DNA of 64,000 nt from Lepidodermella squamata (taxonomy: Eukaryota; Animalia; Gastrotricha): assembly GCA_047495785.1 (NCBI GenBank), contig JBLDXI010000031.1, positions 930,001-994,000 of the forward strand, in the 5' to 3' direction. The notes under the pieces were generated by a model that was given only the letters and a program-made list of their open reading frames with translations, was not told where the DNA came from and did not search any database. Below, piece by piece: positions 2,219 to 37,772 of the stretch. Positions within the stretch are counted from its first letter, which is position 1, and every line of letters begins with the position of its first letter. The translations under genes and the position numbers were made by a program.

Positions 2219-5056
2219 GTAGGTAAAAGCCCGCTGCCAAAAGTCTTTTCTTTCTTGCGAATCCACTTTCGATACAGCTAACGAGGCGTGAGCATTAAAC
2301 GGTCTTATGCGAGGCGACAAAGTTTGTAGTAAAACATACGAGCTATTTCCAACTGCTGGAAGGCCGTTAGAGCCTCTAGATGGAAAGTATTGTTTTCGTC
2401 GCTAGGCAAGCGCAAAGATTCGGTGGAAAAAATCGTTATATTTTATCGCATGACGCAAAACCCATTGTTAGGAAATTTTGGATATATAATTAATGAAATC
2501 TCGTCGTTCGTATTTGCTACGCAGTTCCTATTAGCCGAAATTTCGAAATGATAAAACCTTTTTTATTTCATTCCTTTCTCCTGTATGTTATTTTACGTGG
2601 GCGTACATCTACCTTTCAGTGTACCGAAGTGTTGAGGGAGGACCGCGCCCCCTCGACGCTATCCTTGACCGCGACACACCTTGATCCCTACGCCCTCTTC
2701 TAAAGCATACATCCCGTATCTCTAGCCCAAGAGAGCCCCGAGCACTCGAGTAGCAATTTTTTTTACTCACCATTGCATTGCTAAATCACCGTCGGGCGAC
2801 GTCCGCCATGCACATAGGCTAGCTTCCTTATCCGCTATAGGCTAGTGCCCCTCCCCAATATGTAATGCTCCTCAATCGATAAAAATGAGAATAAATTACC
2901 GTATTGAGTCCCAAAGTTGTAGTGAGATCATTTGGAGCTGTGACCCCAGACCATCCATTTGCTTCAAACAGTCGAACAAAATATCATCAAGATTCAAGTA
3001 ATTATTTCTTCAACTTTGCAGCGGGGCCAAAATTGGGGATAGTTTCATTTGCAATCAATTTTAAATATGATCGCCGAATCTCGATCGCTCACGCAGATGT
3101 TTTGGGACCCTGGGCATGGTTTTCATCTTCATATTTGAATAATTTGAGGGTGACAAGGACCAAGGACTATGAATGTACCTAATATCTTATTGCTAACTTT
3201 CCCATTTCATGTTCAATGATTTTCTTGAATTTTCCGGTAATTTTCAAGGAAATTTCAAGATACCGCATACCGCACATACCGAACTACAAGGTAAGGCTGA
3301 GAAAAAAGGGCAGGGCTCCAAAGCCTTCAAAGATTCTAGGAGAATTCTTGCAGTGATTTAAGCCAGGTTTCTTTATTTTACATCGTTTAAAAAGATCATT
3401 TTTGCAGACCTTGTGTTCCTTTTTCAGTGGCAGTTTTTCTAAATTGCTCCACAATTTCCTTCACATGGTCAAGCTTCAAGTCTAATCGCGCCATTAAATT
3501 CCACGATTCCACTCCTGTCTCAAAATACATTTTCTTATATTTTTCGAGCTTCAGTTTCAAAATTTTCAATGTTTTCTAGCTTGTTTGTCACAGAATAGTT
3601 CACGTGAGTCGGATTCCGTGACATGATATAATAACACGGTATTTTTCATAAATTCTCATTCTTTATTATCCATCCGCTTTTTTCAAGAGAAAAAACATAA
3701 ATTATAGTAAATATTAATACCTATAATAATAATATGCCATATTACAATTCAGTATTGAATTTATGGATAATTTCAAGCAGTGTCCAAATATAACGTAGGT
3801 GTATATCAATATCGCTATTTACAATATATTTCTTTCCACACGCGAAACGCAACAATTTTTCCGTTCAAAATGCATCTCTTTATAATATAATTGCGTCATG
3901 ACGATGCTTTTCCTTTCAATTCCAATTTGCTCTACCAGACACATCGAGAAATGAAGTGATAATGAATAAATTATACGAGTACCATGTAAAAGATTGTTAA
4001 CAACACACACCAGAGTGGTAATATTAGCAGAAAAAATAAGAGACGGAAATTATTCTTGAAATGTTATTATCATCATTATTACCATCCATTTTAGCAGCGA
4101 GAATCAATGCAATCAATTCGATGGCGCCGGCCAACGACCAGCAAATTATTTGAGCAGCAGTAAGAAATAGCAGCGAGACGCCACGCACGAGAGAGAGGAG
4201 AAACCGCAAACATCAAACAGACGGCATCACATCGATTTATCATTTTCTACTGTTTGCTAGGCAATTTCGGGCGGGGGCAAATTATCGAAGGAAAAAAAAT
4301 CCATCGCTACGAGGACGCGAGACAAATCGAGGGCATTTTAACAAAGCCATCCATTTGTAAATATTTAATCAAATTTTTAGGAATTTTCCGGGATTTTTCA
4401 AGTTCAAGCGAAAAACACTAAAATTTTGAAAATTGCCAAGTCTAACCCTAAAAATTCCAAATTGTTCTTCATTTTCAGGAATATTACAGAAATTTTCTAT
4501 AATACGTAAAAAATTTAATAATTACGGAAAATTATTTTCTAATATCCCACGTGCCGTCGATTCGATTTTAAACAATTTCCATTACAATTCAGGAAACAAT
4601 GAGATTGCTACATTCAGAAGGAAGACAGCTACTTTCCTAGAGATAACACGAAAGATTATGCAGTTCAAGATATCACACTCAAACATAGGAGAAAAAGTGG
4701 TTGCAATGTGAGATTTTTCAAAAAATTTGCTTTTGGTTTCACAAACACATGACTTCAAGACTAGAAAAGTGCTACGAGGAGAAGGAGAAAATTTCAGATT
4801 GTTATCGAATTTTATACACATTTTTGCTTTCAAAACAGCCATAGATATATATCAATTCTTCAATAGGTAATAATAATCAATCACAGGCAGCAACAAGATA
4901 GAGCGCGCGCGCGGAAAAGGCGGAGATTCTTCTCAGTTTTCATCAGATTCAAGGCAAGGCAACGAGATTAGACAGTTAATTTCGTTCATCTCCGAATAAT
5001 TAGGCACAGATCGAGGCGGAATAAAATTATTCAAAAAAATCAGAATTTTTTGTTAA

Positions 5057-11941: not shown

Positions 11942-14900
11942 ATGGAGGATTGTGTTCCGGTGGGATCGACGTTGTTCAGGAAGCTGAATTTGTACGCGTT
12001 GGATGAATGGCAGACCACGCCGCACCCTGAGACCAAAGACCTGGTCAATTTGAGCTATTTCAAGCTGTTTCCAGCGCCATTTGGCGGTCCTTTCGGTATT
12101 TTCCGCTTAAATACGTAAAATACAGGAAAATTTGAGATTAAATATTTACAGCTTTGGTTCGCGATGAGTCGAAATTCTCGCAGTTTGTCCGCGATGGCAG
12201 GCCTATGCCGATCAGAATTTACACTACAACATGCTCTGCAAAACCTATTGGAACATTTTTGGTAAATTACCTGTTAGGTTATGATAAAAAGTGGAAGTGA
12301 CTTATTTTGGATTTTTCTCGCATTTTACTGGCTATGTTTAAATTTTTTTACAACGAAAATATCATTTTGATCAAAAAGGTGGTTATTGATTTTACAGATA
12401 AAAACAAAAAATACAGTTTTTCAGTTTCTCAATTTTTGAAAATTGGCCAGTTGTTTTCCTACCAATTTTTTCGAATATTTATATCTCCAATTCGCGAAAA
12501 GTTTCGGAACATTTTTTCGTGAGGCGATTCATGGTACTCAAGTATGAATATAGGATCCTAATTTTGATCTACCTTATTATCAACCCTTTTTTCTTCGAAA
12601 TTGGTAAGATTTTTCAAAATTATGTCCTAAATTCGAGAAAATTGCCCAAATTGCCCAAATACATATTAAGAAAAATAATTCCCGTTATAAAATATACACG
12701 AATTTTTATGGCAATTCTGGCAATTCTTGAGATTTTTCGCATCGCCTCAATTCTAGATATATAAATTCATTTGTTATATTTTCAGTGGGAAGGCGAAAAA
12801 CTGCTGAAAGTCGCGTGGACTCATGACGAAAATCTGCTATGCGTTCAAGTCGACGGCACCATCCGCATCATGTCAATGTTCGGCGAAAAGCTGCGCGAGT
12901 TCAAAATGGACGCAGACGGGCGCGTGGTCGACGCCATGCCAGTCTACCCAAGCGACTTCACCAACACCGGCCTAGTCGCGCTAAACGCCATCGGCCGCTT
13001 CATCTACATCCCGGATATCTCCGCTGAATCTGGGCAGTTGAAGCGATTCGAAGATATACCTCAGTTATCGCTGGACGCTATCAAATGGACCGTAGCTCTA
13101 ACGCCGAACTACACGCGGCTTTTCGTGATAAGCAACGAAAGAGACCTATATCAGACCGATTTAGACGGGACCCTGGTTAAATTGACGTATCCAACGTTGA
13201 GTTTTTCGAAGTTTATCAACGTAGCAGTCAGCGTTGGGTCGATTTACCTCGCGTTATTGACTGATAGATCGGTGATTATCACAACAACAGGCGACCCGGT
13301 TCGAATAACTATCGAGCATGTGCTATCGCAGCCGGCCGACTCGACGTGTTCGTTGTACTGGGTCGGCACAGATGCCGTTGCGTTGTTTCGCCCATCGTTC
13401 GGGTTGACAATCTTCCAAATGGCGTCGAGTGATAACCACTCGGAAATGGTCGACCAACCCGCGTATTTTGTGCCTGAGGTCGATGGGCTGAGGATTGTAA
13501 CGAGTTCAGCTCATGATTTCATGCACGCCGTGCCGCAGGAGGTTTCTGAGGTGTTGGCCCTCGGCTCGCAAAGCCCGGCTATGTACCTGTACGAGGCGAA
13601 TAAGTTGTTCCGCGAGGGCAAGGCCAGCGGGGCGACTGAGTACCTAGACAGCGGGGTGCGTTTGAGGCTTGAAGAGGCCGTTTCGCGGTGTATCTCCGCT
13701 GCGTTGTACGAGTACAAGCCTGGCCTGCAGAAGCAACTGCTTGAGGCTGCGAATTTGGGGCGGTGTTTCCTGCTGGCGACGAGTGCTGGTCGGCTGTCGT
13801 GGCGGGCGGAGACCGCGGAGATGGTGCGCGTCATCAGGATTTTGCGTGTGCTCAACCAGTGTCGTGAATACATGCCTGGAATGCCGCTCACGTACAAGCA
13901 ATTCTGCGTGTAAGTTGCATTTTTTATGGCTTGAATGGGTCTAAGGTTCCAGCTCTAAATTTGAGCTTTTTCTTTTCTCGATCAATAAGGAGTTTTTACT
14001 TTGGCTCTCTGGTATCAACAGCTAGGTAGAAATTTTGTAATGTAAGCCACGATTAAGTGCCTGGATGTAAAACATTTTTAGTACGTAAAAGGTCGGTTAG
14101 GTTTATGACAGAGGTTGGAGAAAAAGGGCATTGTGATTTGGTGCAGTTTTGATCGAGGTAGTGCTCGCCGATGGTACAAAGTTTCTCTTGGTTAGTCGCG
14201 TCACAATGTTGTGTAATTCTTTTCGAAGCCGGTACTACGCTGCTAGGGCAACCGATGTATTGCTATTCGCTTTCGTTACAACTGAGAAGATAACGTTTCG
14301 CAAAGTGTATTTGGGTGCACCATTTGTCGTTGATAGTTGATAGCCCAGTGTTACAGCACCAACAAGTGTATTTATTATGAGAGTGATTTCCAAAGCGAGT
14401 TGGCATTATTTGTTTCAAGGTGTTGGATTTCCAAGTGATTTGCATATTTTCTCCAAAAAATAGAGCAAGCGGTTTGATTGCATCTTTAGCTTTTTCTGCT
14501 ATCCTGTCACCAAGCAACGGCAAAGATAATCTGAAAACGTCAGTGATGGCGTTTTTGTAGGCTCGGCAGAGTGTGTACAGCGTATCATTCGTTTTACGGT
14601 GTTGAACAATAAATTTCTTTTGATGGACACCGAGTGAAAAGAATTAGCTAGGAGTATGTGGTCGGGAACCATTGGCTTTTTGTAAAATTTGTAAATCAGT
14701 TTGGCGGTAAAATTGGTGTAAATCGGATGGTCTTCCATTTTGAAAGTTCTCGAGCAGTGAGCCAACAAAATTCATCATTTCTCGATCGCCTCGTGTTCTA
14801 ACTGACGATTAGGCGCTGTTAGCAAGTTGATAACCGATCCCATTGATTCCACAACCGATTCAATCAGAGAAATCGCATCTCATAAGAATTTGCTCCATGA

Positions 14901-17028
14901 CTTCCTCTTTAAGCTTACTCGATTGCGGTCTAAGTTCTTCGCATTGCTACTTCGTCGCGTCAACAATCGAGTAGAGAGAGAGTCGGACTCTCTGCGAACG
15001 TTATCACGAGTGTTGTGAACGATATCGGCAGCTAGAGCGGAGAGGTTTTTCGGATATTGCGCGAAAGTTCACTGCGAGGTTGTAGGGACTCGCAAAAGAA
15101 ATGAAATAAAATTTGAAACGACAGTTTCCGACGTTTCCGACTGTTATGCCACGTCTCACTGGTCGACAATACTGATTCAGAGCTGGGAAACCAGCCGCTT
15201 TACAGATAAAACGAGCGTCGATGACGGTTTGGAGCGGGTCTTTAACCTGACGGAGCTTATGCAACAAAGTCTCGTGTTGCTGAGAATGCTGTCAATCACT
15301 CGAACTTGATGTGGCGCAAATTTAGTCACGCTGCTTGAACTTGAGACCAAGATCGAGTGACGTTTGCGAATCGCGTAGTTGTTGGTAGGCTAAGCCGAAG
15401 TTGAAAATAGAAGCGAGTTGTTTGAAACCTTTTTCGACTGATGGAAACCGTTTTCGAACAGCCGTTCTCAGCCAGATTTCCGAGATGAAGGGATTTACGA
15501 AAATTGAGATGTTGTAAAATTAAGCATTATGAAAAGACAAAACACTATTGGCCATATTATTTTTATTGTTCGTAGAATTTAATGAATGGATTTTTATGAC
15601 TGTAAATTCTGCTTCGGCAATAATTCGTGCAATTTCTTAGTACTTTCTTCATATTTTCTTAGGTTCTATCAACGGAACTATCCTCTTGCCGGATTTCAGT
15701 GGCTGCTCTTACGACTGACAAAGCGCAGGCAACCCGCGTTGGCCTTCCAAATGTGCGACTATCTGGCCTCAGCCGAAGACTGCGTGCCAATCGACAGCCA
15801 ATCAGGCGTCTCATCGCAATTTCAAGCCAACCAATCACATGCAGTCATCACCCCAGGAGCCGTGCCAACATCCTCGCCACTCCACGAAACAGTCCTGCGA
15901 ACCTGGGCAACATACAAACTTAACCAAACTCGAGAAAGCGAGGAAGCCGTTGCAGCTGCTTTGTTGTCGAAACTTGCGAAAAGTAACCTCCTACCCGAAA
16001 TCGCGAGAATGGCTATCGATAGTGGCCGAAGGGTTATTGCGAGAAAGTTGATCGAAGCTGAACCGAGGGCGACGAAGCAGGTCCCGTTGTTACTTCAAAT
16101 CGGCGAATTTCAACTCGCCTTGGCTCGAGCGGTTGCGTCGCATAACCCGGATTTGATTTCCGGAGTTATGGACGACCTGCGGAAGGCGATGGACAATAAC
16201 CAAGCCTTCCTTGTCCTACTCCACCGCCACGAATCCGCAATCAAATTTTACCTGCAGCAATTGGAGGAACGGCATGATTTTGACTCGTATTTGAAAATCG
16301 CAGATCAGGAGAGTGATTATCTAGGCCAGGCAGTGTTTTATTTACAGGCCAGCATCAGACCGGGTAATGAAGACCCGAGAGATTCACTACGCAGATCGGC
16401 GGAACAGTTCAGCCGTAAAAAGGGCCTCGAATGGGCGAAAGAAAGCGTTGATTCGTGCCGGTTGCTGTTAGAACGGCAGACTAAACTTGACAATGAGTTA
16501 CAGACCACCACAAAACGCACGTCTTTGAGTGAAACAATACGCCAGTTGGGCAAGTCCCAGCGCATCACCACAGCACTTGCGATGAAAAAAGAATTTAACG
16601 TTTCTGATAAGGTGTTCTGGTGGGCCTATGCCAACGGCCTGGCAGATGGCTCGAATTGGGAGGCGTTGGAGGAATTCACGCGGGGCAAGGCGAAAACGCC
16701 TTTTGGCCTGATAGGGGTGCTTGAAATATGCGCGGCTCATAACCACACGAATACGCAAGATGTGACAAGCTACATTGACCGCCTCGACCCGGCAGATCGG
16801 GTCAAGGGGCTGGTTATGGTCGGGCGCTTCGACAAGGCGTTTGAGGTTGCGAGTAAGTCATCACCAAAGACGATAGAAGCCGACCTTGCGCTGATTTCGA
16901 AACGGCTGCCGAACACTCAGACCGAATTGAAAGGCCGAGTTAAGGAGTTGCTAAGAACTCTTCACGAATCGCAACCCGCCGGTGTGTCTATTGGCGGTTT
17001 TCGAATAGGAGCTAGTTCCAGGCGGTGA
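11942..17028 (+). CDS. VPS16: Vacuolar protein sorting 16 (HOPS/CORVET subunit); exons approx. 11942-12095, 12152-12261, 12786-13909, 15663-17028
   Basis: N-terminus MEDCVPVGSTLFRKLNLYALDEW, then APFGGP, EVDGLRIVT, LRVLNQ..GMPLTYKQ, EPRATKQVPLLL and KKEFNVSDKVFWW, all characteristic of Vps16. Confidence 0.93.
14040..15450 (-). mobile_element. Degenerate Penelope-like retroelement fragment in the VPS16 intron
   Basis: FYKKP...NSFHSVSIKRNLLFNTVKRMIRC resembles the PLE RT thumb/linker. Downstream C..C and RYLLSC..*QYIG..RITQH resemble GIY-YIG. Many stops and frameshifts; boundaries approximate. Confidence 0.6.
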
Positions 17029-17797: not shown

Positions 17798-18116
17798 GGA
17801 TGAAAATTATGAATCGTATATGGCTTATAAGCCGACTCAACGACCCTTATATTTTTCGAACGAATCACTTTTATGACGCAACAGGTGAGAGCATGAAGAG
17901 CCTCAATAGTCAAGCGCACGAAATGTTCAGAAATTTCCGCTAAATATCTTGAATTAGCAAGACATAACATATCATAAGTCTTTAGGGGTAATCGGGACTG
18001 ACTTGCTCAGCTCGTTTTGTTCCAGGACTTCCAAGAGCTCTGCAAAGGTAGGACGGTGAGCCTCAGGACACTTCCAGCATGAATTCAACATGATTTCATA
18101 TCTAGAATAGGAATAT

Positions 18117-19065
18117 GAGTATGTTATCATACAAGCTCTCGGCGATAGCCGCTCGTGCTGAATTTTATCTGACGAGGCGTAGCCGAGTCGGGGCACGAGC
18201 GGCTATTGCAGAGAGCGAGGATGCATAACAATTCGTATACCACACCAGATGTTGATCGCTTGACGATTTAAAAATGTTTGCTGAGTATCAGGTGAAGCTA
18301 CAATTTTTCCCAACAATTGTCGCCAAAATTCTGTTTGCAGGGTAACATCAGGTTGAAAAACAACACCTGATGCTGCTCGCGAATTCGAAGCCCATTTTAT
18401 TCTTCATTTCATTTTGCAAAATTTGTTGGTCGATGCAACATCAATTTCCAGGACTAAACACTATGCCAAATGCGTTCCCGGAATAAGACAAATAGGCAAG
18501 AAGCTGATGCGCTTAGAGAGCTCAAAAAAAATAAAAAATAATCCTCAATTTGAAAATTCACAGGAAAATTCCAGATGAATACTAAAAAATAATTAACCTC
18601 GGCTGCGCCTCGGTCGTGATTTCGAAATTGTCCTCGGCTGAGCCTCGGAAAATGGCTCGGTTTCACCTCGCTGAATTCACTGGGCCTTGCGGCCCATGTT
18701 GGTACAACATCATTTTCTTGTTTCAACCTAATTCCCGCTAAAGTTGATAAATTTCAAAATCCTAAATTTTACAACTTATCAGGTTTACGATCCTACCTAA
18801 ATTACTTATCAGTTTTACGACACCAGCGTCTAAATTACTTATCGGTTTTATGGCCCCATCTAAATTACTTATTTATCTGCATCGAGCTCGAAATTTCAGT
18901 AACGATAAATTTTATCCACTTTAACGATCTCTATTTTTAGTAAAAATCTGGCGCCTCAGCAAACACAGGTGTCACCAGCCTGTGAAATAACAAAATCCTA
19001 GCATTTTATCATTTTTGGGACGCTAATGCAAAGAGTCAGGCGATCAACAGGTGGTGTAGTATACG
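18117..19065. mobile_element. Non-autonomous ~950-bp element (copy 1) with terminal hairpin and asymmetric inverted repeats, in the last RTK intron
   Basis: Near-identical to 36470-37450. The 31-bp IR 18234-18264/19035-19065 matches 27/31. Internal ~31-bp tandem repeats at 18774-18872. No TSD. Confidence 0.85.
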
Positions 19066-20261
19066 GTCATCAAAGCCTTTTGGGATAAGTTGTTACATTT
19101 TATCAGGGCAAGAACTCGGTTGCTCGAGGCGAAGACCGTTTGAAACTTGAACAATCACCTCGAAGTTATTGTAACCGACATACCGGCATACCGGCTCCGA
19201 GCGGCATACTGAAATAGCAGCGATCTTTGAATATAATTCCTATTACAACGTGCTGAAACTTACGAGAGAATATTTCCCACATAACAACACCAAAGGACCA
19301 AACGTCACTCTTTGGCAAGAACAAATGGTTGCACAGTGATTCAGGAGGGTACCATCTTGTCGGTATTAGACAATTACTCGTTTCGCTTGATCTATAGTAA
19401 GGCTGGCCGGAGGAGACTAAGCGGGACAAACCAAAGTCAGATATCTTCAACATTTCTTCGTTCGACACCAGAACGTTGCGACACGCCAGGTCCCTATGAA
19501 GGCAGTTGCGGGAGGACAGGTATGCCATACCTCGACAGATGTGCTTTGCATATTCGATGAGTTTCTCCAGCTTCCAGAGCCCAATTTCCTTCGAATTCAG
19601 ATGGCGATGTAGGTTTCCTTTTTTCATAAATGGCACTATAATATTGGCTTGGCCGTCAAGAGAGGCAATCCCAATCAAAGACAGAACGTTTTCATGGTTG
19701 AACTCTTTCATTAGCAAAGCTTCTCGTACAATGAAACAACGTCCGTGCAGGTCCTAGGAAATATATTTTTGACGGTAATCTCGACATCTCGTGAACCTGG
19801 CCTTCTTAGGGTCCCTCTGTAAACAGCACCAAAGAAGCCTTGCCCGATTAGATCAGCAATTTCGATGCAAGAGCTGTGAATGTTGATGTCCTTGATCAGA
19901 GGTATCAGATCGCGGCCTTCTGGAGAAGACTCGAGCATTTGCTGAAAATCGCTGAATGCTGTTATGTGCATGGATTGCCGGCGAGTATCAATGATGCCAG
20001 GCTTTGTTTTTCCAGAGTTTCGGCGAGTATAGATCACGTACCAGATAGAAATGCCCAGAAGAATTAGGGCTACTGCGCCTGTTCCTGAAGTGATTATCAT
20101 TGCCGTCCAGCCTTTTCATACAAAAATGCAACAGAGCTAAAGTAGGCCAACTTATGACAGTTACCATCGGAAGCAGTTAGACTGCCTAGGTCTGTGATTG
20201 GACTGCTTTCAGTTTCCGTTATAAGTTTCCGTTTCCGTTCAGTTTCCGTTCAGTTTCCGTT

Positions 20262-21045
20262 CAGTGGTTCTCAAACTATTTTCGCTCCCGGTCAAAAATG
20301 GCGGCCGGTTGGCGACCTTTACGGCCGCATTGCCTCTTGAACCCTCAATCGGCCGCTTGTAATGATAAAATAGGACCTTTCAGGCCGCACGCCTCTACAT
20401 TCGAGAATTTCGAGTTTTCGAGTGCGCTTCTAAGCGGATTGGTTATTAAATTAGGGTTTTGAGCAGCGGGTCTTGACTGAATTTTTACGCGACCCTTGAT
20501 TGGTCAACTCAAGTCGATTCAACTCAAGTCGCCACCCACCACTCTCAAAAAGTTAACAATTAAAAAGTGAAAGAAAGTTTGTGTAATAATTTCCAAATTC
20601 CAAAATTCCTAACCCGTGCATTGATTAACCTTTGCGAGCGAAGCGAGCTTTAGCTGACAATATTTTTCCATAATTCTTTGTGAAAATATGCTAAAAATGC
20701 GTTAAAAGTGGCTTTGAGTCTTTCTCGATGCGATGGTTACCATTTTATTGCTTAAAAGTCAAATATCTTATAAATTGTCGAATTCGAATCAAAATAGGTA
20801 TTGAAAGATTTGAAAGTGAATCAGCGAGCGAAGCGAGAAACTTTCAAGAAAATTGTGGCTATTTATCATTCGGATACGTCGAAGTTTGCTGGATTATTGC
20901 CCAAGTTATGCGAAACCCTGGACTATTCCCCTCGAAAGAGCCGTCCGGCCGCACGCAATGCATGAGATAGGCCGACCTCTGCCGGCCGCCAAAGTGGGCC
21001 TCGCCGGCCGCATGCGGCCGGAAAAACGGGGTTTGAGAACCACTG
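20262..21045. mobile_element. Non-autonomous hAT-type DNA transposon
   Basis: Perfect 15-bp TIR CAGTGGTTCTCAAAC/GTTTGAGAACCACTG and GC-rich CGGCCG subterminal motifs. Probable 8-bp TSD CGTTATAT (21046-53) / CGTTATAA (20217-24), displaced by filler DNA. Confidence 0.88.
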
Positions 21046-22693
21046 CGTTATATCAACAATTCCGGGCGTACCAATAGTTGAAATTTGAGGCCCGCCGGTT
21101 AATGTCAAGGCCGTTGGTCGAGGGTACGAAGGATTGTCAAGAAACTGTGGACACTTTGTCCCGGTTACATTCAGCAAGCTGCAAGCTATCGTTTCTTGAA
21201 TCCATCCGTTTAGAGGAATGAGGTTCAAAAAACGCACGATTCGGGAGCTGTTATCACACGAGTCTTCCTTCAAGTAGATGCCGCCCTGGAAATAAAAATT
21301 GAGTGGGATGCAGGATGCAGTGAATTATTGCTTATAATCACCAGAAGTAGCTGAGTTCCAGTGCTGGTTACGAAATCGAAATAGGTTGCAAAAGAGAGTG
21401 TCGAACCTTCCGTTAAGTCACATGGCAAGAAGTCATGATTTGCACCCGGTGTAAAGCACAAGTAAGTGTCTGAATCGCAACCAGGGCCATAAGGGGTAAG
21501 CTGGCCAAATAAATATTCATAATTTCCGTCATTAGGACACTTGGGACAAGGTTCAGAATAGCTCTCAACGGTCAGCCCGTTACGTGGGGATCGATGCCCT
21601 ACGACAAAGACGAAATTCCACCAATATATTTCGTGACCGGCTAAAGGAGTGAACAATGTTGTATGTTGTTAAAACTTGTCTCAGAGAGGCTGATATCTAT
21701 TGGTTTCCCGAGTCTCGCAATAGCAAGGCCTTTCTTTTCTCCTAGGATCTTGATCGGGACTAGCATTGAGGATATAGATGCGAGCAAACAGTCGTACGGC
21801 ATGATGAAGTGATGCTCATCGAGCATAGCCGAGACACAATTCGTCGTTTTAGTAATGACCCGTCGGAAGAAAGGAAACTGCCCGGCATCTGCGTAGATTG
21901 GCCAATCCGTTGTAGGATATGGAATTGTTGGGAATCCCCTGTAAGACATGGCTTGCCCTGGCATGAGCTGTGGGATCGACTTCTTTCTACAGGTGTTGTG
22001 CGCCAGCATTATCTCATCGAAGCTGAGGCTTAAACGATGCATGGATAAGCATGAAATGGCATCTAATCCATTCCCACTCAGACTGAAGCTAAAAGTGTCG
22101 ACACGTGTGAAGTAAGTAAGATTCGATTGGTACCATAGAGAACGGAGTGAGGGACAAGCATTGTTCGAAGTTTCAGGCTGCTCGAGCAGTCTGAAACTTT
22201 CCCTGATTACTCACGTGCGTCATGATTAGTCACAATGGTTCGATATGAATATTATTTTTATCAATTTTTTGACGGCAAAGCGTTTATACGTCTGCAAAGT
22301 AGGGAAATTATTCGGAAACCTTGCGGAACACCTTGGAACGCCTCTACGGCACATTTCTACTTCACAGCTGTTAAAAATTTATCAATTTTCAAGTTTGAAT
22401 AAATGAATTTTATTAATTAATCAATGCAAAAATAGCACTGGGTTGACTTTCACTGGGGGATCTTGGATAAAAGCATCTGGTGCAATCGCGGATTGAATGC
22501 AAAGCGAGCGCAGGCTGCGTGCTCGCCGGAGAAAATGGTAAAGCACCTTACCTGGATTTCTCGCTCCACAGCTGTCCAGCTGACGCTGATTATAAAAGCA
22601 CCATCATAATCAGCGTTATTAGTTACGCTCACTTTTTTGGCCACTCTGTATAATATCGATGAATCGATCGATGCTCATATAACGTGTAGATGC

Positions 22694-22948
22694 AGACCCA
22701 AGAATTGGACCTAATTACTTATTAGACCCAGATTATGGCGCAACAATCGAAATTTCACTGCATGTCAAGTTGAGTTCTGTGCGTTCCTTGATGTCTTTGG
22801 TCCCAAATTTGATGCCAACAATTTGCCGTCAGACGATTTGCCTTCCGACTCTTCGTTGAACCGGAATAAAAGGTAATAGAAATTTCGACAGACCCGGGAT
22901 TCGGATCTAAATATCGGATCTCGCTGTTTATGTTTGGCAGTTGAAGTG
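22694..22948. mobile_element. Diverged partial copy of the TTAA (piggyBac-like) MITE at 26760-27256
   Basis: Reverse-complement similarity to 26760-27025; ends ...GGCAGTTGAAGTG followed by TTAA. Confidence 0.7.
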
Positions 22949-23722
22949 TTAAACAACTTATCGACAACTGAACCTACAACGGCCTTGGACGGAGTCCCTG
23001 AATGCGTTCTTAAATCGCTGGGAGATTTCTTAGCACTTCTAATATTCCACAAAATCCTCACGTAGGGTACCGAACACTTGGATACTGATACACAAAAATT
23101 TAACCAGCAACTACAGACCTATGCATTTCCATTCTATCATTCTAGCCGTCGTTTAAGAAAACAAGCTAATTTTCAATGACCATTTCGAAAAGGCATGGGC
23201 TAAGGCGAGAAAATGGCTTTTCGCACTGAAATTGGAAGCGCAAAATGGCTTCAATCGAAATTGCCTCAAAGCCAACAGTCTTATCTTTTCGCACAAAAGA
23301 TCTTTTGCTACAAAGAAATTTACTTGGAGCTTATTTTTGCGGCCGATCTAAAAATAGCAACGTTGTCGGTCGGAGAATAAGTGTCGCATTGTACCTGTGG
23401 CCGGAGCTAAGGCTGTTCGGCCGCCGAAAATGCCGCCGGTGAAAAAGTTTTCGGAGAATTGGTCTACAGTCTTATTAAACCTGAAAAGGGTCAACTCTGA
23501 CCATGCTCTGAAATTTGGTTTAGCATAATAGCGCTGCCGTTGGCCACATGCTTTTTTGCTGCCGGAGGCCTGCTTTATTTAGCTTCAGCTTATGATGGCA
23601 GGCATGCGCGTGATAATCACTTGCCTAACACAATACATATGATGCCATGGATGCATGATATCGCTTAAAGATATAATCAAGCTGCATACCTTATTTATAA
23701 ACAGTCTGTTTCAGTTAAAATC

Positions 23723-26700
23723 ATGGCTAAGGTGTCAATTCTTAATACCCTGTCAGCTTTTCTCCTTATTTTTAACAAATATTCGATTCCCTTTGAGCTG
23801 CCCTACAATATGGATTTGCAAGATATCAACTTCATTTCAATTATTCCCAGATCAGGCTCGATTTACAGCGACATAAGTGCTTCACCCGAGAGGTTTTTTT
23901 TATACAAAATGTTACTATGTCTAGTAATTTAACAGCAAGTATTCCAGTATGTTCATATATCCTCTAGAATTCTTCAACGACACTTTCAGCTTTTGCTCGG
24001 AGGACAAATTTTTCCCCGCCTGGAATTTACTACAAGCGCAGCTTTTCCGAGCGATAGCGGATGTAAACAGCAATCGCTCAATTTTGGGCGGCTTGAATCT
24101 TGGCTTTTGCTCGATTAACAGCTTTCAGCTTGCAGCTTTCCAATTTATGCCAGCCGATGGCTCGCTCGACTTGCGGCAAACCGAATAGCCTTAGCTAAAG
24201 AAATTGATTCCATTTTCAAATTGGGCGATCCCGTTCCATTGATAATAGGGGCATTAGAGAGCGACGTCACAGCGGCTGTTCTAGATCGAGCCCAAACTCT
24301 AGATATGCCTGTGATTGATTTCGGCTCCACTGCAGTGGAGTTTGACAACCGAGATAAATATTCGCTATATTCAAGAACAGTTCCTTCGGATGCAGATCAA
24401 ATTTCGGCTATTTTGGATTTGCTGGAAAGTCTGAATAGATCGTCCTGCGGGGTTATACTATACAGTCAAGGCGCATATGGAGAGTCCGCTCACGGTGTTA
24501 TCCGAAATCACTTGAGCTCTTGGCAAGCGGTCAAAATAACCTTTTCGAATGCTGACCAAATAATGAAGCTGTTAAACGCATCACAAGTCGAGACAATTGT
24601 GTGCCTCTGTGAGCGATGGGCATTTTCAAAAGTTGATTTAGTGCTGCGGCAGGTTGATTTCCGAGCAAAGCCTTTAGTTATCGCTGGCCACCTTTGGAAC
24701 GGCGATATGAACGATAAAGATTTCACAAAACCGGGATCCAATTACGACTTCATAGCTTCAGCATTAGCCATGGAGCCAGACTACACTTTCCCAGCTTATT
24801 TAAGCAGCACGGCGTTGGATTACGACCAATCAGGCGAGGGTAATACTATTTAGCTTCGAATTGATAGAAAATTATACACATCTGAACAATAATTTTTCAG
24901 CTTCACTAATTGAGTTTTGGAAATGGGCGATAGCGAAAAATACTCTGCAGTTCAACATTTTACCCTCAGGTATGGATGCTGTATGGATTTTTAAGGAATA
25001 TTGACCAGAATTTAATAGGCATAACGGTTGATGAATCATCATTTCCTGTGAGCAAATACACTTCGAGCATTCAAAAAGCTGTCCTTGCTGCTGTGTATGG
25101 CTTACGTGATTTTCTCAACGCAAGATGTCCCCCAGGAAGTGCAGCGTTGAAGGATAGATGTCCGAGGGCAACGCTGAATCGCTTATTGCTGGATGGCCGA
25201 GAGCTCCAGCGGTACATCGAAAAAGCTAAATTCAATGTACCCGGCATCAGAGAAACTTTCTCGTTCAACGAAAACAATTCTGTCGCGGGGCGATATAATT
25301 TTTCATATTACAACAGCGAGAAATCGCAATGGATAGAATTCCTTATATTGGGCGAAAGACAGTGGGCTTAAGTACTTCGGAAACAGCTCAATGTTCCTTA
25401 TTCAGGCCGCGAACTACACATGTGGCAATGACACAGTTGTGCACAAGTCAAATCAACTCTGGTTCGGATATGGATTGTTTAATACTCCTTGTCATGCAGT
25501 TCGTAAGAAAACCTATAAGATGAGCACTCAACCGAATTGCTCGGATCAGCTCGACGTATGTAAAGTTGTGACTCCATCTAGACAGGAAGCAATTAAAGGT
25601 TGGGATCTGGCAGTCCTGATTACTATCGCCATCTCTCTGGGGGTGATTTTTCTCTGTCTCACCGTTGCAACAACGACTTTCTTCATGCTAAACCGCAGGC
25701 TCACGACAGCCCCAAGCCGCAAACATGGACGATTAGACGAACGAGCCCTGGATGAAATATGGAATAGTGCGAATTTGATCGAGATCCCGCTGAAAAACTG
25801 CGATCAAATCGAAGTTGCTCTTGAGCAATACGAAGCTGGCGAAGAGCTGACAAAGAAATTCGTTGGCTTTGTTACAACCAGCGGTTTGAAATTATCAAAA
25901 AAAAGCATAGCTACAGGACATTATGGGGTTGTTTATGCCGGAGAATTGCAGGACGAGAGAGTCGCCGTAAAAATCCTCAAGTCTAGGAAGCCGGCGGATG
26001 TCGTCGAATTCATCCAAGAGGGTCTGTTAATGGCTTCGTTTGAACACGAAAATGTGCTGCGATTTCGAGGCATGGCTATGATGTCGAACTGGCCCGTTAT
26101 CGTTGTTCCTTTCATGCAAAACGGCAGCTTGCTGAAATTTCTCTTGAAGCATTCAAAATTGAATGGCATCTCTCAAAGCAAACTGTGGACATTCTCTTGC
26201 CAAATATGCAAGGCTATGGTCTATCTCTCATCTGAAAAGTTCATCCATCCATGACATCCATCGGGATCTGGCCTGTAGGAATATCTTAAATTGGCGATGA
26301 AAACCAAGCTATTATTGCTGACTTCGGTCTATCTCGCCAGCTTTACGAAAGCGAGTATTATAAGCCTGCAAACGCAAGCCGACCATTGCCGATTCGCTGG
26401 CACCCACCAGAGTCGCTTCGAAGCGAGAAATTTGGCGAAAAGAGTGATGTATGGTCGTTTGGCATTGTTTTGTGGGAGATTTACAGCCATGGCGAGCGGC
26501 CATATGCCCATATCAAGGAAGAAGCCGACGTTTTTACAGCTGTTTTGGATCGTAACGAGATGCTCCAACTACCCGAGAACTGCCCTAACGAAATGTAAGC
26601 TGTTTGTGTTGACTTTTCAAATAATCTAAACTGCAAAATAGTTACGCGATCATGCAAAGTTGTTGGAAACTCGCAATAGACGAACGACCTTCGTTTTCGC

Positions 26701-26759
26701 AGCTATTAGAACAGTTGGAGATGAACAGAGATACCGCACACTCTTCTGAGTCGATTTAA
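23723..26759 (+). pseudogene. Venus-flytrap (ANF-receptor/class C GPCR-type) receptor tyrosine kinase, VKR-like architecture; frameshifted
   Basis: Signal-like N-terminus. VFT motifs RAIADVNSNRSILGGLNLG, IIGALES, PVIDFGSTAVEFDNRDKYSLYSRTVPSD and AVLAAVYGL. TM LAVLITIAISLGVIFLCL. Kinase motifs GHYG, VAVK, HRDLACRN, DFG, YESEYY and SDVWSFG. Introns ~23893-23968, 24840-24900, 24970-25018, 26595-26641. Four frame-breaking lesions. Confidence 0.85.
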
Positions 26760-27256
26760 CACTTTAACTGCCAAAAATAGACTGCTAGATCCGATATTTG
26801 GATCCAAATCCTGGGTCTGTAAGTCTTTTTTTCGGGTCAACGATGCGTTGTAGAGCTAAAAGCCTGACGGCAAAGTGTAGGCCACGACTCGGCGGTTCTT
26901 TTGACACCAAATTCGGGGCCATAGACTTCAAGGAACGCAGAGATATCAACTTGTAAACACATTGAAATTTCGATTTTTGCGCCATAATCTGGATCTAATA
27001 ATTAAGTCCAATTCTTGGGTCTGATTTTTGGCTATAATCCAAACTTTCGACGCTATTTCACAGTCATTTCTAAAGACATGCTCACACCTTGAGGACCCGA
27101 GTTTGGTGTCGAAAGAACCGCCGGACCATGGTCTACACTTTGCCGTCAGGCATTTTGCCTTGCGACGCATTGTTGACCCGAAAAAGGACATTTTGGCAGA
27201 CCCAGGATTTGGATCCAAATGTCGGATCTCGCAGTCAATTTTTGGCAGTTAACGTG
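26760..27256. mobile_element. MITE with ~160-bp imperfect TIRs, TTAA-type (piggyBac-like)
   Basis: CACTTTAACTGCCAAAAA...TTTTTGGCAGTTAACGTG with long inverted arms. Left flank TTAA, right flank TCGA. A related copy at 22694-22948 ends at TTAA. Confidence 0.8.
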
Positions 27257-27329
27257 TCGATAATATGCATATGGAATGTTGTTTATTTGGCTTGTAGAGA
27301 GTATTTAGGAGAAATATTATTTACTTGGC

Positions 27330-29359
27330 ATGCATTTTGTAGTATTATTGTTACTGCCGTACCTTGCAAGTAATGCCTTGGTGCAACAGACTGAGCTCGG
27401 GGCAAGTACACCATTGCGGTTGGGCTTCGTGTTGCCGATCCACTATCAGGATAATAAATCAAGGTAAACACGGCTGGCAATCAAGCATAAAACCTAAAGT
27501 TTTAAATTTCAGCGGAAAATGTGGAAAGTTAAACCACGACATGGCAGTTTTGTCGGCATTTGCTCGCTGGTACCTTGAAAAATTCAATTTTAATTACGGA
27601 TTTTTGGGCCTCTCGGACCAAAAAGTCGGTTTTTACATGATCGACTCTTGCTCAAATTCTGCTATAGCGCTGGAACATTTTTTTAATCAACGCGCGCTAG
27701 CCGCAACAAATCCTCGCATGACCATCCCGATTTACATCGGACCTGCAAATTCTGAGCTCGCTTTCACCCTTGCACCAGCTTTTGAATCTGCCAAAGTGAC
27801 CTTGGTTAGTTGGGAAATGCCGGTATTGACGTGGTTAAGTTGTTCATTTACAGGTTGATTTCAGCGGCTCGTTCAGCGAGCTAGGCGACAAAACGAAGTA
27901 TCCTCGATACGCAAGGACCAGCCCAGACGATAAGAGCTTAGCAATTGCTATCGCAGATTTATTAGTCGATGCTTTTAATCAAACGTGCACGCTCGTAATC
28001 TATGACGACACGAATTTTATTGACCGATCCGCAGTCGAAGATCTAAGGACCGCCTTCAGAAACACTGGGCTGTGTGTTGCCGGTGAAATAGATTCTAAAA
28101 CTCCCTTCCAGGCACTCAACACCTCTGCTACTCACGTCGTTTGCCTTTGTCGAACAAATACATTATCGAAACTTATGAAAGCACTCAGAGGACGAAAAAC
28201 AAGCATCAAAATTGTTTTGGCGAGGTGCGTTTGAAAAAAGTTCAATCCTCACCTAGGGTTTATCTAGCCTTTTGAAATTGAGGGTGGGTAGTCGTAAAAT
28301 GGGATCGTAAAAAATGGACATAAAAAGCTCAAAAATAGCAAAAAGCTCGAAAGTTTGGGGTTGGGTAGCCAAATTTTGTGGGTGGGTTGAGGGTGACTAG
28401 ATAAACCCTTGCTCCTCACCAAGTTAATACAAGCGCTCTTGTAGTGATCCTGACGGAGGATTTGAAAACTTCAGGGAGAAAGTGGATGTAGGTCTAGTCA
28501 AGATTTCGCCTTTCCTTGGATCGATTCCGGGTGAGAGTGATTTTCGAAGTTGGCTAGCCAAAAGGCCTGTGTTGGACTCAACAATTGAACCTTGGCTCTC
28601 TGAGTGGATCGATGGTAGGATAATTAGCCTGTGCAATTCCTAGCAATGATTGCTATTGTTTTAGAGGGCGGAAATGTGGCGGAAATGAAATTAACCAGCT
28701 TTGCTTATCATTTGGGTGCGGCGATTTACTCAGCCATTCTAACTATGGAGAAAGTGGGGAAAGAATACTGTGCTGCTAAAAAAGAAAACTTATTCAACTG
28801 CTTGGTCAACGGAGATGATGCTTTCGCAAATTCTTCGAGGTTAGAAAGCCATGTTTACGAAATGGACCCTACCTCACTGGGACTGCCGTTTTCTTGGGAG
28901 AAAGATGGAAGTCCACCAGCAAGCTATGCATTTTACTCAATGGGTAGTGATTCAATGTGGACAAGAATTGCTACCTGGAACCTTCGGGAACGCGCTATTC
29001 GTGTCATCGATAGCAATGAAGCTAGAACAGCCTTCGACAGCCTTACAGGCCTTACCTCTTCCACCTGCCCCGCTGATATTTGCGACCGGAAAATGAATGC
29101 TATGAATATATCGATCAAGCAGTGTCCAGTAATTCGACCGATCGCAACATCGGTGACTACGCCAATTAACGAAACAAACGCAACGACCGCAGCATGTCAA
29201 ATTACGTCGAAAGCTGACAATGCGGCAGCTATCGTAGGGGCGATCCTCGGCTTTTTGCTGCTGGTCATTTCGATTGTTTTCATAATTTTCTGTTTGAGAA
29301 GTCGGCAAAAAGTCAAAAGGACTCAACAGCGGCTAGCAGAGCATAATGCGCCGCTATAA
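27330..29359 (+). CDS. Single-pass Venus-flytrap receptor with ~20-aa cytoplasmic tail and no kinase; exons 27330-27463, 27513-27804, 27853-28224, 28445-28614, 28664-29359
   Basis: Signal peptide MHFVVLLLLPYLASNA. VFT motifs LGFVLPIH, GFYMIDSCS, YIGPANS and VDFSGSFSELGDKTKYPRYARTSPDD. TM AAIVGAILGFLLLVISIVFIIFCL. The spliced frame is open; AATAAA at ~29407. Confidence 0.82.
28253..28411. mobile_element. G-rich MITE with 8-bp TSD (P- or hAT-type), copy in an intron
   Basis: TIR CTAGGGTTTATCTAG/CTAGATAAACCCTTG; flanks ATCCTCAC/CTCCTCAC; homologous to 32816-32981. Confidence 0.85.
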
Positions 29360-32160
29360 ATTCGACCTTGCTTTTTTGGTTTATTTTTTAAATTATATTT
29401 ATATGAAATAAATTATGCTGATTAAAACTACATTATTTTGCAAATTAGTTATTGCGTCTTCGTTTTGTAAATTAAGGAAACGTGAAACGCGGTTTTAGCG
29501 CAGCTGAGTCGTTGATCCAAGTTGAACCTGAACTTACTACAATGAACGCAATGTCATATCTCTGCTTGCTATCTATCTACTACTTGGCATTCTGAGGCGA
29601 ATAGATCTACGTTGTCTACTACTATCTTGAATCCGTCGAATGCAGCTTCTTGTCGTGTATTTTGTTAGAATGATAGGAAAACATTTAACCCAAAGTCTTC
29701 AGGATCTTGGTTGTTTTGGAGGCGCTATCTGTTCAGGAATAGCCTAGTCCGTTGTGGTAGAATTGGGAAAGATAATTCCATTATACTCCATTATAGTTGC
29801 TAACGAACGGGGTCTTTGACTTTCACGAAAGTTAGCATTTGCAATAGAGAACTTGGTTACTTGCTTTGAGCTTTGACTCTGTCTGTTACTCTGTCTGCGA
29901 TGATTTCTATCTCTGCCAGAGGAGAATAAGCTGAGGGCTGAGGCGTCCAAATTTCTTCGTGATAAACATAGTACATAGTTAAACGTAGCCATGGACTCTC
30001 GTTAATGAGCTAATCTGGAAATAGTGCCGTCTGCTGTCATAGCAAATGCTTATCTACCTATGCCTTGCCAATTATGTTGGCAGTGTGCCAATCTACGGAA
30101 CAAATTGCTATTCGTTTGTTGATGCTCGTTCTTCTATTTTTTTATTGACAGGCCTATGAACTCAATACATTCATTTCCCATCGAATGTCATGTCATCATA
30201 TTTGAATTATGATTTTAATTGTCGGAGCGATCTTTTGCGCTTACAGATGATACGCAATACCTTAATCCTTAATCTCATTTGTGGCTAGAAGGCATGGAAT
30301 CAGATTGACACTATCATTCGGAAGCTGGCAAGCTTGACTTCTGCAGCTGACAAGTTTATACTGTCAATCGAAGCCCTTTTGGATAACCAGAAATGGTGGC
30401 GGAGACAATCTTTCGGGATGCTGACGAGCCAGAGAGAATACCTAACCATGCTTGATTCTATATTCTATATTTTAATTTCATTCGCTTTTTATGTTTCATA
30501 GGCGTTAATATCGAATTTTGTCGGAGGATGATCTAAAATGAATGCTGGAAGTTGTTACCAATTCGGCTGTGTGGATAAAATGATATTCTACTCGGAGCCG
30601 AATCGATAGTTGGCAGGGCGAAAATTATTCTACTGATACGGATACGAGTATGACAAGTTGGAAATCGGAAATCAGTCAATGGGAAAATCAGTGCAAATCA
30701 TTGACGATATGATCGTATCGTTTACGAGTCACGAGTCGACAAGCAAAATGGCTCATCAGCTATCTTCAGCTATTTTAAATTCGCAATCTTTTAGCGATTA
30801 TCGTCGATAAAATAGCGGCTAATATCAACTCACTTGGACGATCCCTGATTTAATTTGTTCTTCCGTTGTTTTTTCTTGTTGATATAAATAAATGTTGAGC
30901 TTGGAAAACTCCGAAAAGTGTGTTTTGTCGACGCCCCAATTATCATGCATGGTCAAAGTTTAATTAGCAAGTTTGATTAGTAGCACAGCAGCAGCAGCAT
31001 CAGCAGGTAGCATCAGGCCGAAGATTGAGCTGAAATCGAGCGTTTTATCGTTTGAAGTTTAATTTCAGTGCAAGATGCAATATTTCCGCGATTTTCACTC
31101 TCACGCACGACCCACGATTTTCGATGACCAGTTGAGGGAGCCTCGGATTTGAGTCTAATTTTCAATCAGTGATGCGCAAACTTTTCAATACCCGGCGATT
31201 ATGACAGCCGGAAATGTCCATAATTTTCCATGGACCGATTGCACACATAATTGCACGTATTAAGCCCGAAGGCCAACCGGCCGCAAAAAAGGCTGAGACC
31301 AGCGGCCTGAGGCCTTAAAATCCAAGTTCGCGAACTAAAAATAGCCGAAATTGTGTTCGAACACAACCTGTCCATCTCGATTCATTTAATTCAACCGGCT
31401 ATTGGTTGATTACAGAAAAAGCTTTCAACGAAAAAAATAGTCGTATACAAGCATTTGGCGCAATATTTTCAAAGGTCTAGTTGCTCATTTATTGACGGTT
31501 TTTATGCCTGGAAAATACAAAGACCAACGACCAACCAGGTTCAAACTGAATATGGAGTTATCGCGTGAAAAATGGTCCAAGAAAATAAAGCAAAGGTTGC
31601 AATTTCAAAATTTTCGACCATCTCTTTTGGGCAACTTTAATAACAAATTATATATCCATCGGAACGAAAAACCGGTGGCATCAGCCGATTCCTTGTGAAA
31701 AACTGCAATAGAATTGCCAGACAGCCGATGGCGTTGTCAATTCAGGGCATCTTAAAATTCTGCACTACAAAAAATAATTCGGTGAAAACCGAGTGAAATT
31801 TCGCTGTTTAGTAATAACTGACTAAGAGTACTGAGTTTAGTAATCACCAAGGTAAAAACCGAATGTGGACTTCGTTAAAACCGAGATTTTGGTAATTACT
31901 ACAGCGTGAAAATTAACCGAGTAGGATAAAAGTCGGTTAAAACTCGGTTAAAACCAGATTCGTGAATACTTCAGTAGTTACTTTTCAATAAGTTTTTCTC
32001 GGTTTTCACCGATTGTCATTAACAGGTGTCATCAAAAAGCTAATTACTAATTACTCAGCCTCCTGAGGTCTCAGAGGCCGGGCACCATCCCAGATCCACT
32101 CCTTACATCGTTTGAAAGAATCGAAAGACAAATTACTTGACTTTTGTCGAAGTTGACTTG

Positions 32161-36328: not shown

Positions 36329-37772
36329 TTATGGACTCTCATACGCACTTTCGTAAGTCGCTTCAACCTTGCCCTTGTCTAAAATGGCTATAACCCTCTT
36401 ACAGTTCGGGCAAGAATGACGCCACTCTGCAAAAATAGAAGATAGTTCAGGCTATGAATAAAAGGATAAGAGTATGTTATCATACAAGCTCTCGGCGATA
36501 GCCGCTCGTGCTGAATTTTATCTGACGAGGCGTCAGCCGAGTCAATAAAATTCCGACGAGGCGTAGCCGAGTCGGGGCACGAGCGGCTATTGCAGAGAGC
36601 GAGGATGCATAACAATTCGTATACCACACCAGATGTTGATCGCTTGACGATTTAAAAATGTTTGCTGAGTATCAGGTGAAGCTACAATTTTTCCCAACAA
36701 TTGTCGCCAAAATTCTGTTTGCAGGGTAACATCAGGTTGAAAAACAACACCTGATGCTGCTCGCGAATTCGAAGCCCATTTTATTCTTCATTTCATTTTG
36801 CAAAATTTGTTGGTCGATGCAACATCAATTTCCAGGACTAAACACTATGCCAAATGCGTTCCCGGAATAAGACAAATAGGCAAGAAGCTGATGCGCTTAG
36901 AGAGCTCAAAAAAAAATAAAAAATAATCCTCAATTTGAAAATTCACAGGAAAATTCCAGATGAATACTAAAAAATAATTAACCTCGGCTGCGCCTCGGTC
37001 GTGATTTCGAAATTGTCCTCGGCTGAGCCTCGGAAAATGGCTCGGTTTCACCTCGCTGAATTCACTGGGCCTTGCGGCCCATGTTGGTACAACATCATTT
37101 TCTTGTTTCAACCTAATTCCCGCTAAAGTTGATAAATTTCAAAATCCTAAATTTTACAACTTATCAGGTTTACGATCCTACCTAAATTACTTATCAGTTT
37201 TACGACACCAGCGTCTAAATTACTTATCGGTTTTATGGCCCCATCTAAATTACTTATTTATCTGCATCGAGCTCGAAATTTCAGTAACGATAAATTTTAT
37301 CCACTTTAACGATCTCTATTTTTAGTAAAAATCTGGCGCCTCAGCAAACACAGGTGTCACCAGCCTGTGAAATAACAAAATCCTAGCATTTTATCATTTT
37401 TGGGACGCTAATGCAAAGAGTCAGGCGATCAACAGGTGGTGTAGTATACGAAAGCTTACCTCTCAAGTTATGACTCCACATAGACGCCACTGCAAAACTG
37501 GAAAGCAAACATCTTGCAATCGTGCAGTTACAAATTTACAAGCAATTGTCATACCAAACTGGAGCCAATAATGACGCGGAGATGAAAAGCAAAATCAAAG
37601 CGATGTTTTTCTTCTTGAATTTACGTTCGACAAGGGTGTTTACATGAGCGTCACAGTGTGGGCACTTCACACTCATCATGGGCTGGTCAAAAGACCTGAA
37701 ATCCGGCAGAACAACAATTGATTCGCTCTTCTTTTTCGGTCGACATTCTTTCGGCTCTTGGGCATCTTTCAT
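36329..37772 (-). CDS. LITAF-domain protein (copy A), 3 exons, last intron expanded by a TE
   Basis: PMMSVKCPHCDAHVNTLV, then a hydrophobic segment, then last exon EWRHSCPNCKRVI (36426->36329). Confidence 0.82.
36470..37450. mobile_element. Non-autonomous ~980-bp hairpin element (copy 2), in the LITAF A intron
   Basis: Near-identical to 18117-19065 plus a 31-bp extra hairpin arm; absent from the matching intron of LITAF B. Confidence 0.88.

Follow-up and report, generated by a model that had tools for sequence, protein, structure and literature searches.

Can a receptor tyrosine kinase (RTK) carry on the outside of the cell a protease domain that has lost its catalytic residues? The question is raised by a gene on the minus strand of a 64,000-nucleotide stretch of DNA from the gastrotrich Lepidodermella squamata (GenBank assembly GCA_047495785.1, contig JBLDXI010000031.1, positions 930,001 to 994,000), which is called the window here, with positions counted from its first letter. 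An original prediction, made by reading the sequence, had proposed that this gene joins a catalytically dead trypsin-like ectodomain to a transmembrane (TM) helix and a tyrosine kinase. The explanation that we favour, and to which we give an even chance of being right, is that the gene encodes a lineage-specific single-pass RTK whose ectodomain most likely comes from a protease domain of the chymotrypsin fold (S1A type), and that the copy in the window is a null allele. That the first ectodomain exon, exon A, corresponds to a chymotrypsin-type N-terminal barrel we regard as probable, the same statement for the whole domain as less so. By this explanation an ancestral S1A domain would have lost all three catalytic residues, its activation N-terminus and ~24 residues of the first barrel, and the domain, if made, could only bind and not cleave. 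Dimerisation driven by a ligand would then lead the intact-looking kinase to phosphorylate its own YY activation loop, and in the window allele a 1-base deletion past the ATP-binding lysine would truncate the protein ahead of helix C.

A receptor tyrosine kinase gene on the minus strand

The window consists of eukaryotic DNA whose genes are spliced, and on its minus strand open frames between 22210 and 17972 could be chained by canonical GT..AG sites through translation and splice-site reading (Table 1). The kinase part was readily recognised. On the main kinase exon the Pfam profile PK_Tyr_Ser-Thr (PF07714) scored 1.7e-50, the flanking exons gave weaker partial matches, and tyrosine kinases in the PDB matched down to E 9e-45, with the EGFR, JAK and FGFR kinases heading the list. 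In agreement with the original prediction, a TM helix (a stretch of 23 hydrophobic residues, whose best 9 average 3.1 in hydropathy) is followed by RR and by the motifs of a tyrosine kinase, namely GxGxxG, the VxVK lysine, the helix-C Glu, HRDLACRN, DFG, the YY activation loop and those of the C-lobe, and exon C, the last ectodomain exon, joins the TM exon in phase. Moreover, the ectodomain junction at 21285 and the acceptor at 20111, both of which had been proposed, came out at identical coordinates from our reading of the splice sites. Thus, the prediction that the minus-strand gene encodes a single-pass RTK holds. The database proteins closest to it, with 42-50% identity, were fragments from invertebrates (Saccoglossus, Ptychodera, Capitella, Bugula and molluscs) that bear the name 'hepatocyte growth factor receptor-like', and no kinase relative above 50% identity was found in the protein collections searched. 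Since the PDB list is led by EGFR, JAK and FGFR kinases, 'MET-like' serves here as a label and does not settle the kinase family.

Upstream of the TM helix, exons A, B and C are three consecutive open exons of 87, 99 and 71 codons, which together would give an ectodomain of ~255 residues with an even number of cysteines (ten). The frame of exon A remains open upstream as far as 22210, and left unspliced at its other end it would run into a stop at 21646-21644. The A/B intron has an in-frame alternative, a 77-nucleotide intron ending at 21599, which would cost 14 codons. Apart from the A/B intron, the gene has short introns of 56 (B/C), 55 and 47 nucleotides, the last of these as it stands in a second allele described below. 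The stalk in exon C holds two N-glycosylation sequons, and sequons are confined to it; the exon ends in phase 1, its two missing bases being supplied by the TM exon across a canonical GT..AG intron. In each of the three exons the proposed frame had the best codon usage of the six frames. Neither ten minus-strand frames upstream nor the open frame to 22210 gave a Pfam match (LamG, SEA, Sema, PSI and IPT included), and exons A to C had no paralogue within the window. High-copy repeats begin at ~22152, and the gene may therefore be a copy truncated at its 5' end.

Among the contigs that carry the best kinase relatives, two eukaryotic metagenome contigs (ENA ERZ28597766 and ERZ28596154; 5411-7358 and 2682-4499) have a kinase of 45% identity downstream of an exon with a MOLO1 domain, and in another best-match contig a related kinase lies behind PSI/TIG repeats. 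We considered these contigs as possible members of the same family and rejected them, because they show only other receptor types (PSI/TIG, MOLO1). The MOLO1 and PSI/TIG ectodomains on related kinases may be taken as a sign that ectodomains are freely swapped on this type of kinase.

Trypsin-like features of the ectodomain

We then asked how far the ectodomain resembles a trypsin-type protease, with positions expressed in chymotrypsin numbering. The strings quoted in the original prediction were all recovered, in trypsin order and upstream of the TM helix, in the minus-strand translation of exons A to C. Exon A contains ADAGQFPF (G-x-FPF), a Cys-x16-Cys unit ending in ...PYDCL, and GLAIARLGKPI; the Cys-x16-Cys has exactly the Cys42-Cys58 spacing, with ...PYDC where trypsins have ...AAHC, and GLAIARLGKPI stands, by motif alignment, for the DIALLKL..P of the Asp102 strand. 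In exon B, LC...PCDLTEGSTL (Cys-x12-Cys-x4-G-x2-L) can be likened to Cys182...Cys191-QGDSGGPL, and LLL/GGIY...DSC, in which LLL/GGIY straddles the B/C splice (slash), to LxGIVSWGxGC. Exon C has IVRFLNL..NGWIQETI, whose Trp-Ile lies exactly 18 residues past the Cys, so that the Cys-x17-Trp-Ile spacing is exact. Asp occupies the position of His57 in the profile alignment described below, whereas the assignments of Gly/Leu to Asp102 and of Glu to Ser195 come from motif alignment only; the protease-like domain would therefore be catalytically dead if the homology holds. When exon A was shuffled with its composition preserved, none of 100,000 shuffles contained all three S1A motifs in order, and for exons B and C the corresponding frequencies were 0.015 and 0.003; these figures are optimistic, since the patterns were loosely written after the sequence had been seen.

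A targeted profile provided a less biased test. From 120 bacterial loci with a DNA pattern for Cys-Gln-Gly-Asp-Ser-Gly-Gly-Pro we obtained 74 trypsin-family domains, of which the 10 ending in Trp-Ile/Leu/Val formed a 'W-type' subset. Because the filters of library-wide searches hide weak single-family signals, scoring was left unfiltered, and each exon was compared with 5000 shuffles of itself. With the full profile exon A aligned at 7-38 and was outscored by 38 shuffles (p ~0.008), while with the W-type profile it aligned over 11-52, which covers FP...Cys42...Cys58 and places the Asp opposite His57, and was outscored by 48 (p ~0.010). Exon C aligned with the W-type profile at Cys220...WI, and 94 shuffles did better (p ~0.019). 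Exon B matched the GIVSWG-Cys220 part of the W-type profile out of register (113 of 5000 shuffles better, p 0.02), and this match was treated as noise. Thus, the two ends of the domain give weak signals at the right places of the profile, and the middle gives none.

A further pointer to a protease origin came from the predicted fold of exon A; like the sequence searches, folding was done exon by exon. AlphaFold, run without an alignment, gave exon A a mean confidence (predicted local distance difference test, pLDDT) of 53, with residues 33-79 at 57-74. The model runs strand-strand-strand, then a helix starting at ...YDC, then a hairpin, and this modelled order of elements is the order found around His57 in chymotrypsin-fold barrels; one strand pair of the six-stranded N-terminal barrel appears to be missing. 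Foldseek returned nothing at E 0.001 for this model (E 0.17 or more), and its first rows were HtrA proteases with probabilities of 0.89-0.96. In a comparison independent of Foldseek, against 48,161 representative chains, the best Z was 5.2 and PA-clan proteases took 27 of the 50 rows listed; these were 3C and 3C-like proteases, HtrA/Deg, V8, MamO, exfoliative toxin and FAM111A, and in every case the N-terminal barrel of the protease aligned with residues 17-80 of the model. A second look at Foldseek's own candidates found 49 of 50 to be chymotrypsin-fold proteases, again matched through the N-terminal barrel. Proteases of the PA-clan type make up an estimated 1 in 100 or so of PDB clusters, and against this base rate their share of the rows is an enrichment far beyond chance.

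Against the favoured explanation, on the other hand, stands a series of observations. The lack of a trypsin-fold match, which the original prediction had named as speaking against itself, was indeed observed at the level of Pfam, PDB sequences and the ESM Atlas: no exon matched Pfam Trypsin at a threshold as lenient as E 10, a phmmer search of the complete set of PDB sequences turned up no protease for any exon, and a feature search of the ESM Atlas with the ectodomain exons gave no match, their 'recognition' values of 1242 and 1883 lying in the range of shuffled proteins. In an exhaustive HMMER search of 1.84 billion representative proteins, the 189-codon frame that contains exon A had 0 matches at E 0.001, the exon B frame had 0 matches in a word-index search, and exons B and C had 0 in two metagenome scans. 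The exon C result is weak, since the W-type subset was picked for the very Trp motif under test, and with the full profile of 74 sequences exon C had no match. Exon B was not significant with the full profile, matched nothing in the expected middle part of either profile, and was modelled at pLDDT 36.6 with no fold match. The distance from Cys58 to 'Asp102' is ~20 residues instead of ~44, which leaves the first barrel ~24 residues short, and the Cys191-Cys220 pair lies 36 residues apart instead of ~24-29. Each of the exon A fold matches is weak (Z at most 5.4), the model itself may lean on the same sequence cues, and an Atlas shape search gave unrelated folds. As for the gene itself, no signal-peptide-like start (ATG plus hydrophobic segment) was found on the minus strand over 21850-30000, within 8 kb upstream, which leaves room for a small or distant 5' exon; no public RNA run contains the locus; the A/B intron is only 35 nucleotides long with a weak donor; and the kinase frame of the window allele breaks by 1 base near 19729/19730, with a stop 8 codons later. 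Support for the trypsin-fold claim is thus confined to the N-terminal half, where the exon A profile (p ~0.01) and the fold rows point the same way, and does not extend to exon B, which has neither profile nor fold support.

Much of this would be expected if the ectodomain were a real but unrelated, new cysteine-rich domain in which the order of trypsin-like motifs is coincidental. Such a domain would account for the lack of a significant sequence match to any trypsin model or structure, for the failure of exon B in every test, for the unrelated folds returned by the Atlas and for the two deviant distances. It would leave to coincidence that the two ends of the domain align independently at the right ends of the S1A profile, that the exon A model draws PA-clan proteases almost exclusively, and that the Cys-x16-Cys and Cys-x17-Trp-Ile spacings are exact; we consider a new domain somewhat unlikely.

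The gene-structure points bear on another alternative, in which exons A to C belong to another transcript or are noncoding and the kinase gene begins at or near the TM exon. The absence of the locus from RNA runs and the doubtful 35-nucleotide intron fit with this, and the codon-usage signal in exons A to C is modest, at 1-2 standard deviations above intron windows. However, the TM exon completes the phase 1 end of exon C through canonical splice sites, the second allele has only 131 nucleotides between the two exons, and the sequon-bearing stalk would run straight into the TM helix; moreover, a TM exon with neither an upstream ectodomain nor a start codon would amount to no gene at all. We therefore hold this alternative to be very improbable, and return to the reading in which exons A to C form the ectodomain of the kinase.

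Alleles and neighbourhood of the gene

The allelic state of the gene could be followed in the contigs of one public run, evidently a DNA run, in which the locus is seen as two alleles with depths of ~45 and ~59. The window copy is a null allele, and a second allele found in the sequenced material keeps the frame open. The frameshift of the window allele lies between the ATP-binding lysine and helix C, and at this place the second allele has one extra base and a single open reading frame of 282 codons from the TM helix into the C-lobe. A tiny intron was considered as the cause of the frameshift and rejected, because the only GT..AG pair available would give an intron of 20 nucleotides whose removal takes away the catalytic lysine, and because the reads show a plain 1-base difference between alleles. 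The ectodomain exons (21087-22152) lie on one contig at depth 92 with a single difference.

The alleles also differ by two repeat insertions, both of which fall in predicted introns only. The second allele lacks 18117-19064 (948 base pairs), so that the intron there is 47 nucleotides long, and it lacks 20219-21051 (833 base pairs; joint 20218>21052, depth 57.5), which leaves an intron of 131 nucleotides. Read depth over the insertions is 500-3600 against ~92 in unique sequence, and reaches 1000-3600 in the ectodomain/TM intron. Part of the first insertion (~18130-18200) recurs at 36460-36586 with 92% protein-level identity, and the insertion has a 31-nucleotide inverted repeat at 18128-18158 / 18193-18223. 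In exon K2 the second allele is 9 nucleotides shorter, in frame; the 9 extra bases of the assembled allele (19177-19192) surround the direct repeat CCGGTATG CCGGTATG and add three residues to a C-lobe loop. Among the allelic differences listed for the TM, juxtamembrane and kinase exons, 6 are synonymous and 2 non-synonymous, these counts covering the listed differences and 31 more lying across the whole compared stretch outside the listing. This 6:2 ratio speaks for recent purifying selection on the cytoplasmic frame. In the ectodomain there are two differences, both non-synonymous and too few to judge.

Could the gene then be a decaying relic, that is, a member of a birth-and-death cluster of receptor genes that has lost its 5' end, from which no allele makes a receptor and in which the protease-like exons erode neutrally? 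The frameshifted kinase of the window allele fits such a relic, as do the failure to find a signal peptide or an upstream domain exon, the high-copy repeats both directly upstream from ~22152 and in two introns, the shuffled-like Atlas values of the ectodomain exons, the non-synonymous nature of both ectodomain differences, and the fact that a neighbouring receptor gene is also frame-broken in its catalytic loop. What speaks against it is that the second allele reads through the kinase, that six of the eight listed changes in cytoplasmic exons are synonymous, that the remaining kinase motifs are preserved, as is every splice phase, and that three consecutive open exons with ten cysteines would be unusual for old neutral DNA. 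Taken as a full account, the relic is a tentative possibility; as to function, we give it a weight similar to that of the favoured reading. A step further in the opposite direction, the gene may encode a working short-form RTK with a dead trypsin fold as its whole ectodomain. Such a receptor would bear, on a MET-like kinase, the counterpart of the protease-homology module of HGF and MSP, and a null allele of it would segregate in the population. This we consider rather doubtful, and we keep to the favoured explanation of a lineage-specific RTK with a probably protease-derived ectodomain and a null allele in the window.

Two further genes were annotated nearby (Table 1). The divergent neighbour resembles a Venus kinase receptor; in this assembly its frame breaks twice in the catalytic loop, at ~26249-26290, by an apparent 13-nucleotide duplication before the HRDLACRN codons (CATCCAT CCATGA CATCCAT) and a 1-nucleotide shift, and it is thus a broken allele or a pseudogene. 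The Vps16 gene has as its sole close database relative a metagenome protein of 51% identity, indicating that the lineage is poorly sampled in databases. In addition, an element whose reading frame is conserved between copies (...IRYLDPNPGS...) occurs upstream of the receptor gene at 22758-22973 on the minus strand and twice near 26800-27250 (26789-27248).

Table 1. Positions of the predicted exons and introns of the receptor gene and of neighbouring genes in the window
Feature	Position	Strand	Basis and remarks
Exon A, putative N-terminal barrel	21676..21938	-	sequence reading; acceptor ...cttacag/G (slash, splice)
A/B intron, 35 nucleotides, GT..AG, weak donor GTTTTA	21641..21675	-	sequence reading; frame 2 to frame 1
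Exon B, 99 codons, five cysteines	21342..21640	-	sequence reading
Exon C, putative end of protease-like domain, then Pro/Thr-rich stalk	21072..21285	-	sequence reading
Ectodomain/TM intron, 960 nucleotides, GT..AG, phase 1, with high-copy repeats	20112..21071	-	sequence and reads
Exon with TM helix (20097-20029), juxtamembrane region and most of the tyrosine-kinase domain	19264..20111	-	Pfam, PDB
Intron before K2, 55 nucleotides	19209-19263	-	sequence reading
Kinase exon K2 (C-lobe)	19097..19208	-	sequence reading and reads
Intron before last exon, 995 nucleotides, with 948-base-pair repeat insertion	18102-19096	-	sequence and reads
Last kinase exon, stop codon, short tail without docking motif	17972..18101	-	Pfam, end of kinase profile
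Venus-kinase-receptor-like gene, divergent neighbour	23723-26759	+	ANF_receptor 3.7e-14, then TM helix and tyrosine kinase
Vps16 gene, three exons, the last a 480-codon frame	11942-17028	+	Vps16_C 1.1e-40

Comparison with known receptors and proteases

RTKs diversify through the swapping of ectodomains, and in the full-text literature searched and in a survey of holozoan tyrosine kinases we found no description of an RTK with an ectodomain of trypsin type or protease fold. The Venus-kinase-receptor-like neighbour has the same arrangement of TM helix and kinase, with a kinase 41-47% identical over exon K1, but its ectodomain is of the ANF_receptor (Venus flytrap) type. The type II transmembrane serine proteases hepsin, matriptase and corin also display a trypsin-fold domain on the cell surface by means of one TM helix; in contrast to the receptor predicted here, they sit the other way round in the membrane, have catalytic activity and a site for activating cleavage, and lack a kinase. 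MET and RON are single-pass receptors with a YY activation loop, and among named database entries their like are the nearest matches to our kinase. However, no Pfam match to Sema, PSI or IPT/TIG was found in exons A to C or upstream, and the tail here is short and without a docking motif.

A close parallel lies in the ligands of MET and RON. HGF and MSP contain serine protease homologue domains of chymotrypsin fold, in which the catalytic residues are replaced and which have a binding role in tyrosine-kinase signalling. As in those proteins, a dead chymotrypsin-type domain would here be tied to tyrosine-kinase signalling, with a kinase whose nearest entries are HGF-receptor-like. Nevertheless, HGF and MSP are secreted, kringle-bearing ligands whose complete two-barrel fold is recognised by Pfam Trypsin, whereas the domain described here would sit on the receptor and is far more eroded, beyond recognition by Pfam. 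The locus is a weak example, being eroded, an orphan, with no visible signal peptide and with the assembled allele broken, and at the same time it shows an intact allele next to a null one. The roles suggested in the original prediction, a bait for protease inhibitors or a fusion of ligand and receptor, are speculative. If the favoured explanation is true, a MET-like kinase fitted with a pseudoprotease sensor would represent a new way to build a receptor, and a mirror image of the HGF/MSP system, in which it is the ligand that is a dead protease.

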